Positions 9,701-18,684 of a stretch of DNA of 64,000 nucleotides are shown in pieces (within the stretch, counting starts at the first letter, position 1; the number at the start of each line of letters is the position of its first letter). The stretch is from Dimorphilus gyrociliatus (Eukaryota; Animalia; Annelida). The DNA lies in the NCBI GenBank assembly GCA_904063045.1, contig CAJFCJ010000015.1:682001-746000 (forward strand), given 5' to 3'. The position numbers and the translations under genes are program-made. The notes under the pieces are model-generated. The model ran no database searches. It was given only the letters and a program-made list of their open reading frames with translations, and was not told the origin of the DNA.

Positions 9701-12700
9701 GATGATTGCTATGCAAAATCGAATTACGGGTGTTATGGCGTGCATAATGACTCAAGCGTCAAGTAATCAGGACGTAAGATAAATTTAGATTTTCTTTCTA
9801 ATTTACCTAATTATTAATCATTGAAAAATATTTCCAACTTTAGAAAATTCTACAATTGCCATCACAAAAGTACAACAAGTACTCTCAAGTTGCAAAGCAA
9901 TTGAGGGAAGATCCATCGTGCATCCTAGTTTGTATCCTCAGAAGATTTGTTGCAGAGAACGGTGCTGCCTCTATAGAAAGAGCTATGCCTCATAGGCAAT
10001 TAATTGTTGAACCGAGCATTTCTGAGCTTGTAACACTACAAAAAGGCGTGTTAGCGTTAACAAGGCATTGGAAGACTTTATTGTTCTTTAATCCTAAAAC
10101 AGAAATGTCTAAGAAGAAGCATCAACAATTCAATGTTAAATTTGATTTATCGGGGGGGAAACACGATTCATTAGAGTCTAGAGGTACAGATAATGCTAAT
10201 GTAGAGCTCGGGGAAACAGGTGGTGATAATGAAGAGAAAATCTCTTTATTAAGAACTGATGAATGCGATATAGATGATGAATTGTCTATTGAGAATGATT
10301 TATTTAGAGCTGAGAGTAGGGAAGGTAGCCCAACAAAAACTTTAGGAATGAGATCCTATTCCTTACCGGGACCGAATTCTATTCCAGCCCTCAACTTTTC
10401 TACCCTTTTCACCAAAAACGAATCAATGCAATTAAAAAATAGTACTGGGACTATATTTCAAACTGGTAGCAATGTGGACATAGGCGATGTACCTACAGGG
10501 GGAAGCACCACACCTAATAAAAGCAATATTCTTCGATTGCGCCTAAACGAACTCGACTCAAAAGAGAAACACGAAAGTGATATTAATAGGTGGGTTGCGG
10601 AACAAGGAAATTTAAATGGGAACTCCGACGACTTAGTATATCAACAACGCCTTCCAAGAACTGCTTCAAATGCTGGTCAGGATTCAGTATACGCCTACAG
10701 CATTGATGGAAATGCTCCTTCGGTTTGCACGAATACTTTATTGTCTCGACATACGAACCAATGGCGCTTAGTTGACGCACAGATTCTATTCAAGCCATTA
10801 TTACGTGCTATAGGTTTACATTTGGAAGCTGTTAAATCGTCAGCTATGATGAGAAAATTCGGTGGGAATTGTTCTATAATGGCTGTTTTACATACACTTG
10901 TAGTAGATATCATAGATTCAGACTTACCTCGAAATTCAGGAGTATCTCCAGCTACATTTACCTGTAATAATTTCTCGGTTGACATAAATGCTAAAGACGT
11001 CGCCGAAATTGATAAGAAAAGAGATGATTGTAACCTTACCAATAAGCGTCAATCAATAGGAAGACTTCAAGATGCGTTGGATAATGTACAATTAGCTCGA
11101 CCAATGACAACCAAAATGTACTTTACTATTAAGTGTGAAACTATTGAACAATACGTTAACTTGAGCTTATTAAGACTTGTTCATCAGCTTGTCACTATGA
11201 TACAGAGAGTTAACGCTACCCAAGCTGCTTTGAAAATGAAAAAAACGCACAGAAAACAAGATTCTAAATCAAGCACTGATACGACTCATTCTGTTCAAGA
11301 CGAAAAAGACCAGCAGCCATCTTCATCAACTATGAGAGATAAAGCAGAATCAAATAGAACAAGTGAAAAATTGAGCAGTGTATTTTTGCTTATGCCTGTT
11401 GAAACACCTAAAATGACTGTGGATCAACTGGAGCCGCTTCCAGATGATAAATGTTGGAAAACGCTAAAGAATATCTTAGACCTTTATTCATCTGTTTCCG
11501 ATTCTCAAATGAGAACAATAACAAGGTCTAAAATGCAACCTTCAGAATTAGATGTTATAGATGAAGAACCCGGCGGAACAAATACTAAGAGCAAAGCAGC
11601 TCGTTATTCTAATGAAATAGTACATATACCGATATTAGCTTTTGGAACAATGCGAATTGGAACAATAAAATTAAAAGCAAATGTATCAGGCTTGCAATTA
11701 GCTTCCGAAGTAAGAACAGTAGACTTGTCATTAACTCATAGAATTAACGTAAGATCAGAATCAAGAAAAAAATTTGAAGAAACATCATTTTCAGTTTATA
11801 TAGATTATACATATGTATGGTTGCTCGTTGCTGAAACCACAAAGGCTATTCTGACTATCAAATGTCAAAAATCAAATGCCTTCTACTCAAATTTTGGTGC
11901 TATTAGATCACGCAATTCATCTAGAGGCAAAGTTGCAACAATCAAAGTTGGTAATGTTTACGTTGATATTCCGCAACATCTTGCAAGCACTCATGATATG
12001 ATGTACAAAACTACGGAAATTGTCTCTCACACACTTAAAGAATTCATACCTGATAATCTTCATAGGGAAAGCTCACCCCCTGTTGACGTTTGTGACGCCG
12101 CTGTTGAAAATGCTTTAGACGATGATAAAAAGCAAGTTCAAAACGATATTGTTCAAATTAGAGCAATTCTTGATGGTTTGGTAATTGGAGCCTCTCTACT
12201 TCCGTCATTAAGATCTGAGTACGAAATTGGTAAAGTTACAGGATTCGGTTGGACGGGATCAAAAGCAAAAGCAAGCGTTTCTATTCCTCATCATAAACTT
12301 AGCTTCAAAGCAGCTAGATCAAATTTATTTCCGGGTAATATCCCACAAGAAGCATCTGTTGATCTTCCCCTTATGAGTCTCGAAGCTGAATATAAAGAGA
12401 GTAAGATAAGTAAGAGAGGCGAAGAGATTGCTGAAGAATCTGCTTTAAACGAGGGTCTGGACACTAGAACAGGAAAATACATAAAAATGCTGGCAGTTAT
12501 ACAAAAGTTCAAGCATTCCTTAAGTAGCGATCTATTAAATCATTTGGTCTTCATGCAAAAGACATTTCGAAACGAAATAAATGAAGTTTTAAATAAAATA
12601 TCAGGTACTGATAAACCGGTTCCTCTTTTTCAAAGCCGTCAAAAGGCACAAATGCTTTTCTTCATTCATCTTAAACAAGGAGGTATAGAACTATTGGCTA

Positions 12701-15700
12701 CAACCACAAAACCAGCTAAAAATGCATTAAGATTAGAAACCAAAGCCATAGAAATTCGTCTATCTAATCGAGTAAAGAAGGAAAATCAATTGTCAAATTC
12801 CCCCGGCAAAGTGTTTCTAACAGCTGATGTTAAAAAATTGACATTAGAAATCATTCACATTCACAAGAATTACGTATTCCAAGAAGCTGAACCAGATTTT
12901 GAGTCACTAGCCAGCTTCAGCACAACAATAAGAGTTCGAAATGCGCTTGAACACGAAATGGTTACTGGACCAGATATCGGTAAAGATACCGAAGCCCTCC
13001 TTCTGTCCGTTAATAGACCAGTTATTGAGGTTCAGCCACCCGCCTTTGACGCCGCGTTTTGGATTTGGATCGACTATAAAAATGCATTTGAATATTGGAG
13101 TGAGCAGCGTTTAGCCCTTGTTAAAAATGCTTCAACTTCATTACAGCATAAACCTCCTACATTAGCAACCAAGTTATATCAACAAACCAGCTCAACTAGC
13201 TCAGATACTACCCGAGTACCTTCAGCATTGTTTCTTCAATTAACTGTTGATGAATTATGCATCTGTTTACCGCTAACAATACCAAATAAGCGAACAGTAA
13301 GCTTCGATTCCAAAAATCTATTAATATTAACTTTAGATTCTACGCAAATATCGGCTTGCTCAAGGGGTTCACTGGTATCGAAGGGTAAATTTAAAAACTT
13401 TTGTTTGAGATTCGACGAGGATGTTTGTTTCCCAGATGATTGGAAACCAAGAGAGTATCCAGTTATGAACGCTATGTGCGTTCCAAACGGCACATATGAA
13501 GTTTGTTCGCAAACTCACGGGCCAGTTATGGCACCACAGAGACAGAACGCCAAGTGGGTTTTAAATGTAACGTGGCAAATGAAAGGCTTAGATATTCATC
13601 TTAACACAAGAATTGGTGAAAAGTTAGCTGCTTTGGGAAAAACCTTGACTTCATTGGCTGACAATGGAGCTGTCTACTCGAATGTAGATAATGCTGTTTT
13701 AATTGAGCTTGAAAAACGAAAGAAAAAGCAGGAATTGCTAGTGGATGATTTAAAAGCTACGAATTGGCCTCCAGAAACTATAGCAAAAGAAGAAAGGAAA
13801 TTAGAAAGAATCAAGGAACGTCTCAGGCATTCCTTCTTCAACAGTAAATTGACTAAGGATCGTAGGGCCTTAAAAAAGCAATTAGGTATATCAGAAAAAC
13901 AAATTCACTGCAGGTCTAAGTCAGTAGGTGGACCTGAATTACGACGGCAGAGAGCTATCGAAACCTCCCCTGATATTTCTCCAGTGTCAAGTTCGTCTCA
14001 TAGTAGCGTTTCGAAATTGAATACCCACAATCGTACACGCAGCGTTGATGCAGCCTCATCATTTTATTTAAAGGAACTAAAATCTGTTCATGTTGAAGAT
14101 CGTCTCGAAATTATTCCCGATGACCCATCTAAATTTCTAACTGATTCTTACTCTTCATCATCTAGTTCGGATTTGTCTCTCTCAGATACAGAAAGTGAAA
14201 TATCAATATCAACTATGGATGTTGAAGTTGACCAATTAAAGCGTGTTCTCCACGATCCAAATCTAAACGATATGAGAAATGGTACTAATAGATCAAGCGT
14301 ACCTATTGAAGCAATAGATTTTGACTTGGACGTTAAAGTTAGAGTTGAATCTGGTCAGTGTGTATTACATCCTAAGGAGGAAGATTTAAAAGCGGCGGAA
14401 GTTGACGACACAGTTCCAAGTAAACTAGGGAGACCTAGAACAACTAGTAGAGCTTCGAATACACGCTTAAAAATTGGTCCAACAGAAACTGACTGTAGAA
14501 CTGTATTCCTTCTTCCAGGCGTTGATATTAAAGTCCGCTATGATTCGAAAACTGACCCAGAAAAAGAATCAAACAAAAAATCAGGTAATTTATATTGTTG
14601 GTTTACGCTAGAGCGCCTCTCAGAAGAGATGGTTATTAAGACATTCCTGTTAGACTTTCTCCATCAAGCTTTAGAAAATGTGCCAATAGTCAGTAACACA
14701 ACATCAGAAAGTCCCAGCACTGATGGGTCAGCAGTTGATATTGGGGAAACAACTCTAAACGCAGCCGAATCTTTTCCGGTTGATGTTGTTGTCTATGTTA
14801 GAGTTGACCCATCAACAATACGATTTAGTTGTTTACCAGCCGAAAGGATTGAATGTAAACTTGGTATGCCGTCCTTGGACATTGTTTTCTCCACTAGAAA
14901 AGATTATAACGCTGATAAATCTGGCGGATTAAGCGTTACTGCTAGCTTTGCTGATTTCTCTTTAAAAATCTATCATCTTTTTAATATGCATAAAAAGAAT
15001 GCTGACGAGTCTTCGGATACAACAATATATTCACTAGTAGTTAATGTTAAGTTCGTTCGACTTAGTCTATCAAGAACAAGACGACCCGACGAAGGTTTAC
15101 AACCGATATCAAGCATTGTTCGCTTTTCAGCCTCATGCGATATTGGAGATTCAAAATTTGAATTCGATATGAAACGCTTACAGGATATTCTTAATTTCCC
15201 AAAACACTGGTACAGATCAAGTTTGGCTAGACGTTTGTTTCTGGGAGAGGAGAAGAAAGAAAATTTAGACGTTGAAGTACCTAGGCCTACTTTAACTAAA
15301 TCAAAAAGCTTAAATCCTACGAAAAAATGGGAAACGCGAGTATTATTCACAGCTAGATTCTCTAAATTGGATGTAGACGTAAAAATCATGTTGGGGAAAT
15401 TACACTGGAGCACTGTTGGCCCTAATTGTCAAGGTCGTTTAAATGTTGATTCAACTGGATTTAAAGACATGCAAATAAAAGCTGGTTTAAAGGGATCAAA
15501 AATTCAATGTTCTACCGTAGTTATTTCCGGTTCCCTTCAAGTTCGAAATGTTTATGGAGATGTAAGAATAGTCGAAGGTGGAAGAGGAATGAAACTAACA
15601 CCAACGCACTCGGCTGAATTTAACTTAGAAACCTTGGAAACGAGAATAGAGTATATGAGCACTAATATTCTTCTAGGTCGTCTGAATGACTTTTGCCTGT

Positions 15701-17007
15701 TATTGAAGGATGAATGGGTTATATTGAAAAGCGATGATACAACACCAACTTCTTGTGATTCTACTAGGGAACGAAAGGGATTGGTGAATGTTACAGTATT
15801 AGGAAAACTTCTCTGGGATAAATTACACCTTATGTTGACAAAAAGAACAACGCCAGATCTCATTGCGGCGGTTAATCAGATTACTCAAAGAATTATTTCA
15901 GAATACGTAAATTCAATGAAGATATTTGGTATTAGAGAATCAAAGAATATCGACAAATCCGCTGATCATGGAGATACAGATTCGTTAACAAAGGAAATAC
16001 GATACCATAGGCACTGGCAAACTGTATTGGAAATGATTCGCTCTTTTCGTTACGATGTTAATGGAACTTTGACATTGCAGGGAAATAATTTGTCCTTGGC
16101 CTGTTTTGATGGCAGTTCTTTTCAGGCCAAAAACTGGGTTATATTTACCCTCGATGAACCGACGATATCGTTTGACACAAACCCTAGAGATAATGTAACC
16201 TGTTTAGAAGACCTTGATGGACCGAATGCTATAGTTTGTCAATCATTAAATTTTCAACTTGGTCACAGTATGATGAAAGAAAATGTAAGTCGTATTATGG
16301 CGACCATCTGTCGTGTGACAAGAAGTGGAGAAGGTATTAAAAATATGGCCTCATCGGTTAGAATATGGTTTGATTATGCATTCGGTTGCAAGGATCTTCC
16401 CGGTTTGACCGACTTTCCATTATATGACGACGAAACCGAAACGGAAGTTTCTCGCGATAAAAAACGTAAGCCCTATCAGCATGACACAGAAATTATTTTC
16501 TTAATGCCTGCTTTAATGATGTATCTACTAACTGAACACCATCAAGAGCATAAGGAACCAACCTTAGAAGACCCTAAGGCAGATGTCGATTGTAAATTTG
16601 TTACAGATTTTTACGACGATATAAGTGTAACTATCAATGCTGGTGCACTCATGTTTCTTGGTGAACTTATCATAAAGTATATCGATACTGTTGAGCAAAG
16701 TGACCTACGACAGCGCAAATCCGATATTAAAAGTCCAACAAGCGTTCTAAAGGAGGATCAAAGAAATTTCCGTTGTATTAGCTGGCGTCTTGAACCAACT
16801 ATTAAAATGTTGGTCGGAAAACAATCATGTGAACCTTTTGGAATAGACAGAATCCTCAAGTATTTGGGCGTAAAGCATGCGAGTAAAACTATTCCAACCT
16901 GGATGCAGCGTGGAGTTTTGGATCCACTTGATAAATTTGTTAGCGTACTTATGCATAGACTACTCAGTTCTCTAAAAACGCATATTCGTGACAAACAATG
17001 GTCTTGA
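3760..17007 (+). CDS. BLTP1: Bridge-like lipid transfer protein family member 1 (KIAA1109/Tweek/Csf1 family), over 4000 aa
   Basis: An N-terminal TM segment is followed by YYNSR.LG-type and FS.SI.SGK.MFRDV-type motifs. The C-terminus has FRC..WRLEPT.K.L and IPTWMQRGVLDPLDK. Approximate exons: 3760-5412, 5490-5603, 5667-5762, 5822-6170, 6297-7798, 8023-9450, 9518-9773, 9844-17007. Confidence 0.9.
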
Positions 17008-17389
17008 ATTTATATTAAATTGTTAAATGTTTCTAGTCAATCTATAGTTGCCGTAGATATACAGAAACTCTGTTTACATACACGTATGTATTCTTTTCGA
17101 GAATCGAAAAATACGCCATGTTTGAAATACTTAATTAAATATTTCATTTTATTATTATAATAGAGTGCAGAGAAGGATATATGATAATAAAGCCATCATT
17201 CAATAGCAACATTCATTATATATCTTTAGCAATCAACGCTGGAAGCGGAACAATTTCCACAAATCGGCAAACGCGTGAAACATTTTCCGTTCAGCAAAAT
17301 TCCGCTCCAACGTTGCTCCAACTTTTTAACATGCAATGCATTCAGACCAACACTAATGAATAGAGAACGCTGCTGAATAATTCTACATT

Positions 17390-17470
17390 TCACATGTTTG
17401 CCGAAACCCTGTTTGATGAATAAAGTGTTAAATTGTAATAATTATAATCGTTAACAAATTTCCCTTACCG
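17390..17470 (-). other. MDH1 post-stop intron (17409-17468, 60 nt) and candidate readthrough extension ending A-N-M
   Basis: The minus strand reads TGA CG|gtaaggga...ttcatcaaacag|G GTT TCG GCA AAC ATG TGA. Donor, acceptor and length match other introns in this window. Confidence 0.65.
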
Positions 17471-18684
17471 TCAATATCCACAAAATTCTTCGGCAGAACA
17501 CTTTTCCTCTTGCAGCTCAGTCAAAGTAGTCGTCATTTTCTCCTTGCTAAATTCATCAATTTGGAGACCTTGTACGATTGAATACGTATGATCTGGTTTC
17601 GCTTGTACAGGGAAACTGTAAATAATTCCCTTCTCAATACCATATGAACCATCGGATGGAACAGCCATGGAAACATATTCATCTCCCTTTGTTCCGAACC
17701 ACCAGTCTCTCATATGGTCACCGATCGCCTTGGCTGCGCTCATTGCCGACGATAGTTTTCTGGCCTTGATAACAGCCGCACCTCGCGTTTGTACCGTCTT
17801 GATGAAGTCTCCCTTCAGCCAAGCATCGTCCTGGACAGCTTCGTAAACTCCTTTTCCAGCAACTTTAGCATGCCTAACATCAGGGAATTGAGTGTTAGAA
17901 TGGTTTCCCCAAATGATTACGTTCTTGACATCTTGAGGAACTAGGCCCATTCTAGTGGCAATTTGGGCTTGAGCTCTATTCTGATCCAATCTGGTAAGAG
18001 CGGTAAAGTTTTCAGGAGGAATAGAGGGCGCATATTTCTTGCAAATGAAGGCATTAGTGTTAGCGGGATTGCCAACAACTACAACCTTAACACTCTTTTT
18101 GGCGTGTTTATCTAATGATTCACCCTGGGCTTTGAAGATCTTGACATTTGCTCTCAAAAGATCTTTACGTTCCATTCCTTCTCTTCGAGGCATGGCACCA
18201 ACAAGGATGGCAACATCAATATCTTTGCATGCTACGTCAGTATCGGCGGTTGGAATAATGCTCTTCAACAAAGGCAAGGCGCAGTCTTGCATTTCCATTA
18301 CAACACCGTCCAAGACAGTAAGCATAGCCTCAATATCAAGTAGGACGAGTTCAATAGGTTGGTCATGTCCAAAGACATCACCCTTAGACAAAGGATACAG
18401 CAAGGAGTAAGCTATTTGCCCAGCAGCTCCAGTAACTAATACTCTGATTGGGGACTTTTCCTATAATAAATAATAAACAACATAACTGATAATGTGCATT
18501 TGATCGAAATGAAAAGAAATATGGCAGCAAATGTTACAATATCGGCTATTAGATAAAAATCTGAGTATGTTCAAGGTAATATTGTCCAAAAACAATGTTA
18601 CGGTATCAAAGTATATATTTTTATAAAAATGGTATAAATACGTGCAAAATATGTTTAATTGCAAACACAATAAGAACTTACCAT
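17471..18684 (-). CDS. MDH1: Cytosolic malate dehydrogenase
   Basis: Exon 1 ends in ATG|gtaagt (18682-18684). Exon 2 spans 18460-17471 and reads [21 protein letters not shown]...[15 protein letters not shown]...VGNPANTN...TRLDQNRA...[12 protein letters not shown]...[10 protein letters not shown]. Stop TGA at 17471-17473. Confidence 0.97.

Follow-up and report, generated by a model that had tools for sequence, protein, structure and literature searches.

The 64,000-nucleotide stretch of the Dimorphilus gyrociliatus genome analysed here (the window; contig CAJFCJ010000015.1, positions 682,001 to 746,000) carries MDH1, the gene for cytosolic malate dehydrogenase (MDH), on its minus strand. The subject of this analysis is the 3' end of that gene, where an intron 2 nt past the UGA stop codon splits a short in-frame extension ending in a sequence that resembles a peroxisomal targeting signal type 1 (PTS1) and that may be reached by stop-codon readthrough. 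The main reading frame closes with ...GAA TTT TGT GGA TAT TGA, the TGA occupying 17473-17471, and translation verifies a 330-residue protein of the cytosolic type. This protein contains the Pfam domains PF00056 and PF02866 and is 70–75% identical to named animal cytoplasmic MDHs. MDH1 has two introns, one right behind the start codon and the other 2 nt past the stop, and the exon between them (exon 2, 18460-17469) codes for 329 residues (Table 1).

Table 1. Features of MDH1 and its 3' end, in window positions
Feature	Positions	Strand	Basis
Start codon, final 3 bases of exon 1 (ATG/GTAAGT)	18682..18684	minus	Proteins P0001, P0002 and P0003 begin MEK..., which fits ATG + GAA AAG at 18460
Intron 1, 221 nt, right after the start codon	18461..18681	minus	GTAAGT...TTATAG; mRNA contigs L004 and L001 code MEKSP/MEKAP without the intron
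Coding portion of exon 2, an unbroken run of 329 cytosolic MDH1 codons	17474..18460	minus	Translation; Pfam; identity
First stop UGA; with CG (17470-17469) and G (17408) gives UGA-CGG	17471..17473	minus	L004 (strain) and L001/L002 (89% relative) share this context
Intron 2, 60 nt, GT-AG, interrupting the CGG codon of the extension in phase 2	17409..17468	minus	Junction in three runs; depth zero inside in four runs
Exon 3, extension part, (CG)G GTT TCG GCA AAC ATG = R-V-S-A-N-M, PTS1-like -ANM	17393..17408	minus	Homologous tails elsewhere
Near-invariant start of exon 3	17328..17408	minus	82/83 spliced post-stop bases identical to the 89% relative
Predicted stem, 5' arm, overlapping extension codons 3-6 and the second stop	17385..17404	minus	Pair probabilities 0.84-1.0
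Second in-frame stop (UGA A)	17390..17392	minus	Sequence; L001/L002 contigs
Remaining 3' untranslated region (UTR); AATAAA at 17153-17148; mRNA contigs end near 17120-17130	17130..17389	minus	Sequence and RNA contigs
Predicted stem, 3' arm, a 15-nt island identical in the relative between indels/mismatches	17264..17283	minus	Fold and alignment

An intron directly behind the stop codon

The MDH1 TGA is followed by CG (17470-17469) and then by GTAAGG, the donor of intron 2. The intron has a GC content of 23% and the acceptor AAACAG/G, and 60 bases beyond the donor its border with exon 3 reads ...TCATCAAACAG/GGTTTCGG. The spliced mRNA reads UGA CGG GUU UCG GCA AAC AUG UGA, or X-RVSANM, while the unspliced frame (TGA CGG TAA) ends at once. 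The stop, the intron coordinates and the codons had been put forward in the initial annotation and proved exact on the minus strand.

RNA contigs from four sequencing runs (X1, X2, X3, and X10) were placed on positions 16600-17700 of the window (1,101 letters). X1 is a coral metatranscriptome, X2 is a marine metatranscriptome representing a slightly diverged strain, and X10 is a very deep single-organism run whose depth of ~14,000 on MDH1, against 158 on the neighbouring gene, identifies it as RNA. The joint 17407->17468, which skips 60 bases with CT..AC on the plus strand and therefore GT..AG on the gene strand, occurs in contigs of X1, X2, and X10, from three studies, so that the splicing predicted from the DNA is seen in RNA. 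Contigs of mRNA retrieved through protein identity (L004 from a 99% identical strain; L001 and L002 from an 89% identical relative) likewise read TGACGG/GTTTCGG uninterrupted. Intron 2 is real and not a chance GT..AG pair.

Splicing of this intron looks constitutive, as no retained-intron contig was found in any run. Its interior has zero depth over 17414-17450 in all four, with the caveat that rare forms may be lost from contigs. The X10 assembly preserved variants of depth 3 and 13 alongside contigs of depth 9,000–18,000 but no intron-containing form, which limits retention in that run to a trace at most. The median intron of D. gyrociliatus is 66 bp and its short introns are reported to be spliced efficiently (PMC7854359), hence a 60-nt intron is of ordinary size for this species.

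These data bear directly on the proposal of the initial annotation that splicing acts as a second switch, in which the spliced mRNA would give X-RVSANM and the retained form X-R-stop, so that the choice between them decides whether a peroxisomal isoform is made. The PTS1 codons can be reached only once the intron has been removed, and fungi expose cryptic PTS1s through alternative splicing, as cited in PMC4207609. A shallow X3 contig (depth 4) stops exactly at the exon edge at 17469, which may be due to assembly-graph branching; the contig is compatible with such branching but is no evidence for it. The switch is made very improbable by the uncovered intron interior, above all in X10, where the spliced form reaches a depth of ~14,000 and variants of depth 3–13 survived assembly (even if contigs can drop rare forms), and by the ordinary size and efficient splicing noted above. 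Retention would furthermore alter just an already minor product.

Two other possibilities for this region were considered and rejected. An introner or repeat origin of intron 2 finds no second copy in the window, where just chance 9-16-mers match it. An alternative donor upstream of the stop (TTTT/GTGGAT, the sole nearby GT) is poor, would give an end of ...WFRQTCEM without a PTS1, and has a junction that was not seen. Under the general 50–55 nt rule for exon junctions, nonsense-mediated decay of the spliced mRNA is not expected, since a junction 2 nt past the stop places the exon-junction complex within the coding sequence (CDS), to be stripped by each ribosome.

Post-stop frames in animal MDH1 genes

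The spliced MDH1 mRNA combines a UGA-CGG context with a 6-codon open frame ending in -ANM. UGA-CGG and UGA-CUA are the two type II readthrough contexts of Beier and Grimm (PMC3159437), in agreement with the description of UGA-CGG as classically leaky in the initial annotation. The C at +4 is followed by GG and not by the UA of published MDH1 cases, and the MDH1 of Owenia likewise has UGA-CGG. The -ANM end matches only the relaxed pattern [SAC][KRHN][LM]. In the literature -ANM is found solely as a predicted weak PTS1, for example in zebrafish Acsl5 (PMC8919083); Leishmania UAP ends in -ANM and a glycosomal enzyme of T. brucei in SNM (PMC2414269).

The 3' ends of MDH1 were compared across 16 lineages, drawn from transcript contigs, the window and three further genomes (Owenia, Liolophura, and Saccostrea). 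A metagenome scan for eukaryotic MDH1 3' ends gave mainly bacterial MDH, with L005-L008 and L017 usable. A conserved UGA-C context and a terminal PTS1-like frame in relatives had been set beforehand as a check on the idea, and the comparison supports it: a short in-frame tail with a PTS1-like end is present in 10/10 TGA-C lineages, window included, and in 0/6 lineages with TAA, TAG or TGA-G (Helobdella, L087, L092, L095, L007, and L017). Across the lineages sampled, the type of stop matches the presence or absence of a tail without exception. In the other two frames PTS1-like ends number 0/32, and the expected rate of [SAC][KRHN][LM] ends in random sequence matched for composition is 0.3%.

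The tails are similar in form. Owenia fusiformis (L086, genome) reads TGA CGG GTT ACA TCC AAC CTA TAA, or RVTSNL, and the transcript contig L093 reads TGA CAG TTT TCG GCA AAT TTG TAG, or QFSANL. Two more transcript contigs, L088 and L094, carry LPPANL and LVAANL, and the genomes of Liolophura sinensis (L090) and Saccostrea cucullata (L091) carry LTPPANL and LPARL. The tails of L006 and L008 are LSNL and LEESKL, while that of L005 has 19 residues and ends in SHL. Invertebrate MDH1 genes with TGA-C thus mostly have tails of 4–7 residues ending in [SA]-[NRK]-L. As RVSANM, RVTSNL and QFSANL are related by conservative replacements with frame and length kept, the distant conservation of the post-stop frame is, by its sequence pattern, of the protein type. 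The leaky context and short tail, by contrast with what the initial annotation had supposed, are not peculiar to this lineage, as Owenia has an identical TGA CGG GTT and the same tail length, and short tails are usual.

In a protein tree the window falls among probable annelids, beside L088 and L093, with molluscs as the neighbouring group and the place of Owenia unresolved. Within the probable annelid clade (L085, L087, L092, and L095 versus L088 and L093), loss of the tail accompanies a change from TGA-C to TAA, TAG or TGA-G. Taken over the survey, the MDH1 tail is best described as inherited, with several independent-looking absences that represent losses. Intron 2 has no counterpart in the Owenia, Liolophura and Saccostrea genomes, in which the stop is contiguous with the tail. 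With three other genomes reading straight from stop through tail, an intron inside the extension appears particular to the lineage of the window among the lineages sampled.

A different arrangement is seen where the main open reading frame (ORF) of MDH1 itself ends in a PTS1-like sequence. This end is -ANL in the hemichordates Ptychodera and Glandiceps (P0107 and P0112) and -SNL in two unnamed invertebrates (P0038 and P0062). These ends are of the same weak PTS1 type, with readthrough not needed.

The only close relative in the databases, P0003, is known from three JGI metatranscriptome contigs. It shares 89% protein identity; nucleotide identity is 82% over the CDS and 61% at third codon positions. 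This relative and the diverged strain both preserve the first UGA, its CGG, all six codons and the second UGA. Beyond the first 83 bases, where a single base differs, the 3' UTR is 82% identical to that of the relative. A chimeric assembly is an unlikely source of the invariant block, since on either side of it the contig of the relative falls back to ~82% identity, and the junction recurs in another sample (L002). Near 17335 the block also includes an Rbfox-type motif, UGCAUG. Surrounding the second stop, 17393-17381 (AAC ATG TGA AAT GTA G) resembles a short tandem duplication of the AAT TTG TAG of L093, and it may be speculated that such a duplication explains the terminal change from L to M and the shifted stop.

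Probable readthrough, a predicted stem and competing readings

When folded, the spliced 3' UTR is predicted to form a rod in both the window and the relative, with an outer stem of 19 bp that contains one mismatch. Predicted pairing starts 6 nt past the UGA and becomes strong at 7 nt, and the stem closes at +150. Compared with shuffled sequences, its stability corresponds to z = -3.6 in the window (1/500 as stable) and z = -2.7 in the relative (4/200). All differences between the two rods lie in the 3' half, hence structure alone cannot account for the invariant 5' half.

A second possible structure was noticed via a chance-level Rfam match, matches of Rfam in the MDH1 3' region being at chance level only. 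This is a hairpin of 7–8 bp, (U)GCCGAA(A)...(U)UUCGGC(A), that pairs 17401-17408 with 17485-17492 in the spliced mRNA (1031-1085 in L001) and holds the first stop in a loop of 21–23 nt. The stop-spanning hairpin could form only after splicing and would rival the long-range stem for the same 3' arm.

The reading favoured here, with a probability of roughly two in three, is that the locus holds a local form of the MDH1x device, in which programmed low-level readthrough of the cytosolic MDH1 UGA would add a peroxisomal targeting signal. Most ribosomes would halt at the first UGA and produce cytosolic MDH1. A small fraction would decode the UGA via a near-cognate tRNA, as UGA-C(GG) terminates poorly, and continue to X-R-V-S-A-N-M. 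The weak PTS1-like -ANM, a relative of -ANL and -SNL, could then be recognised by PEX5 and bring some of the enzyme into peroxisomes, where it would regenerate NAD+. The extension would be ancestral, its frame, length and [SA]-N-[LM] end being common to other annelid-like and mollusc MDH1, and intron 2 would be a lineage-specific insertion into this tiny second reading frame. As the intron appears to be removed constitutively, the PTS1 would depend on splicing structurally only, and splicing gives no sign of serving as a switch. The 19-bp stem 6–7 nt past the UGA may stimulate readthrough in the manner of the extended 3' stems of viral UGA-CGG sites.

A stronger form of the last step can be proposed, in which splicing itself assembles the recoding signal. 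Removal of the intron would set the 19-bp stem 6–7 nt from UGA-CGG and so lift readthrough well above that of the bare context. This proposal is doubtful. If it is true, the signal would be a cellular counterpart of the type II readthrough signal of alphaviruses and tobraviruses, and would also explain why the opening 83 nt of the spliced 3' UTR hardly vary.

Several observations weigh against the readthrough reading. The -ANM end is non-canonical at both -2 (N) and -1 (M) and is without the basic residue that precedes the -ANL of catalase, making it a putative PTS1, and readthrough in D. gyrociliatus is predicted from sequence. Helobdella, L087, L092, and L095, which belong to this part of the tree, have lost the tail, so that loss of function is common. 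The extension has zero substitutions relative to the only close relative, and near-invariance goes on for 62 nt past the second stop, so that this comparison cannot separate coding from RNA-level constraint. In the stem, compensatory changes number 0, against 4 one-sided changes and 5 broken pairs, mainly at the edges, in a comparison of two diverged sequences only. An equivalent stem is absent in ten other lineages, with z from -2.2 to +2.6 and none near the stop, and the long-range stem, as modelled, would thus be lineage-specific.

Some of these points suit a different explanation, in which intron 2 is an ordinary constitutive 3' UTR intron and the six codons are a remnant of an ancestral MDH1x tail that has stopped working, either through excessive weakness of -ANM or through negligible readthrough, and that is kept as a 3' UTR RNA element (a structure or a binding site for protein). 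This would explain why 82/83 bases are identical in an invariant block that runs 62 nt beyond the second stop, and it fits the position of the extension within the 5' arm of a stable predicted stem. The terminal residue is M here but L in every other lineage, and the device has been lost in related lineages. Such a remnant is nonetheless harder to reconcile with the fact that both dinophilid-like species, and the diverged strain too, keep the UGA, the +4 C, the frame, the tail length and an end of the form [SA]-N-[LM]. Met is accepted as the final residue of a PTS1, and ANM and SNM are listed as possible PTS1s (PMC8919083; PMC2414269), while a stem 6–7 nt past UGA-CGG suits a readthrough stimulator as well as other roles. 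A relic is, overall, fairly unlikely.

The UGA could alternatively be imagined to encode selenocysteine within a C-x-x-U motif (CGY-U here and CSN-U in the relative), followed by RVSANM. In its favour, both species have a Cys at -3 relative to the UGA and a highly conserved 3' UTR. Invertebrate MDH1 C-termini in general, however, carry this Cys (...ACQE, ...VCSD), those of TAA-ending genes included, and no SECIS family match was found in the spliced mRNA of the relative or in the window region at E <= 10 with permissive filters. Tails elsewhere end in a canonical PTS1 (SKL, ARL), pointing to targeting. This interpretation was rejected and is scarcely conceivable.

As to the architecture of MDH1 beyond its 3' end, all 329 codons past the ATG lie in one exon and both introns sit just outside the bulk of the CDS. 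The orthologues span 12 kb in Owenia, 7 kb in Liolophura, and 10 kb in Saccostrea. This pattern suggests that all internal introns were lost, for example via a processed copy, and that the end introns were spared or gained. MDH1 also converges with a giant gene on the plus strand, and the 3' UTRs of the two overlap at 17130-17228. From the giant gene (a single ORF at 9856-17007, 2,383 codons) comes an RNA contig of 12.9 kb that reaches 17228, and the MDH1 mRNA contigs of the opposite strand extend down to ~17120-17130.

Comparison with known readthrough systems

Readthrough of MDH1 onto a hidden PTS1 is an established mechanism in vertebrates and has been reported more widely for animals, so that it is not new. 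Stiebler et al. (2014) found that UGA-CU readthrough gives human MDH1 and LDHB a PTS1, and reported that the cryptic PTS1 of MDH1 is kept in animals down to Hydra, with a main-ORF PTS1 in some species (PMC4207609). The arrangement, which the initial annotation took to be undescribed, is therefore familiar as regards the readthrough PTS1 of MDH1 (PMC4207609), and appears new only as regards the intron inside the extension. Within a limited literature search, no report was found in which an intron so close to the stop divides a readthrough extension. What appears to be new on the sequence evidence is this intron, together with the lineage-specific predicted stem of 19 bp.

The position of the intron has consequences for detection. 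With an intron 2 nt past the stop, screens that use the genome only would read TGA CGG TAA and miss the extension. The pipeline of Jungreis et al. (2016) classes second ORFs interrupted by an exon boundary as splice variants and not as readthrough (PMC5100048). As pipelines tend to discard second ORFs broken in this way, intron-split readthrough extensions are probably under-counted.

Vertebrate MDH1x is among the closest known counterparts. MDH1 readthrough was put at ~4% by Hofhuis et al. (2016), with Trp and Arg inserted at the UGA and vertebrate ends of SRL or CRL, and in human MDH1 it needs just a 7-nt context (PMC5133446). The two systems share an orthologous enzyme, a UGA-C stop and an in-frame PTS1-like tail, with context and tail conserved across species. 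They differ in the context, UGA-CUA(G) in vertebrates versus UGA-CGG here, and in the extension, which including the recoded stop has 19 residues in vertebrates versus 7 here and ends in -CRL/-SRL versus -ANM. Unlike that of vertebrates, the tail here is broken by an intron 2 nt past the stop, and a long-range 3' stem is predicted.

The lophotrochozoan tails (L086, L090, L091, L088, L093, and L094) also resemble that of the window, having the same frame, an equal length or one within 1–2 codons, UGA-C and an end of the [SA]-[NR]-L type. In Owenia the six bases after the stop (CGG GTT) and the residues R-V match those of the window. These tails differ from that of the window in having no intron in three genomes, a last residue of L versus M, and no long-range stem. 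Outside vertebrates the device seems to be regular, with a tiny tail of 4–7 residues, typically ...A-N-L, that always occurs with TGA-C, has been lost repeatedly and is sometimes swapped for a main-ORF PTS1. Ends such as -ANL, -SNL and -ANM could be good test cases for dual targeting by a weak PTS1.

In fungi, cryptic PTS1s are reached via alternative splicing or readthrough (Freitag et al. 2012, as cited in PMC4207609 and PMC5100048). As here, they belong to dehydrogenase or glycolytic enzymes and have a PTS1 past the normal stop, with an intron and a leaky UGA-C at the 3' end. As far as those citing papers describe them, splicing and readthrough are alternative routes in fungi, used in different genes or species, whereas here they would act in series on one mRNA for which a single splice form is seen.

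The stem itself invites comparison with viral type II signals. Firth et al. (2011) describe that type II sites often have, after a spacer of 7–12 nt, a stem of at least 10 bp with arms 100–150 nt apart (PMC3159437). The signals of alphaviruses, tobraviruses, furoviruses and coltiviruses (PMC3159437) resemble the MDH1 site in their UGA-CGG, a predicted stem of >11 bp and arms that are conserved islands. The spacer is 6–7 nt here versus 7–12 nt in viruses, and the arms are ~100 nt apart here versus 101–154 nt in alphaviruses. Unlike the viral signals, the site lies in a cellular mRNA, has a second stop inside the 5' arm 21 nt downstream, and has a stem predicted without compensatory substitution. 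The likeness is real in the geometry of the model, while its function is unproven. A predicted stem beside UGA-CGG would nevertheless make MDH1 of D. gyrociliatus a simple, testable cellular candidate for an extended 3' readthrough stimulator of the viral type.

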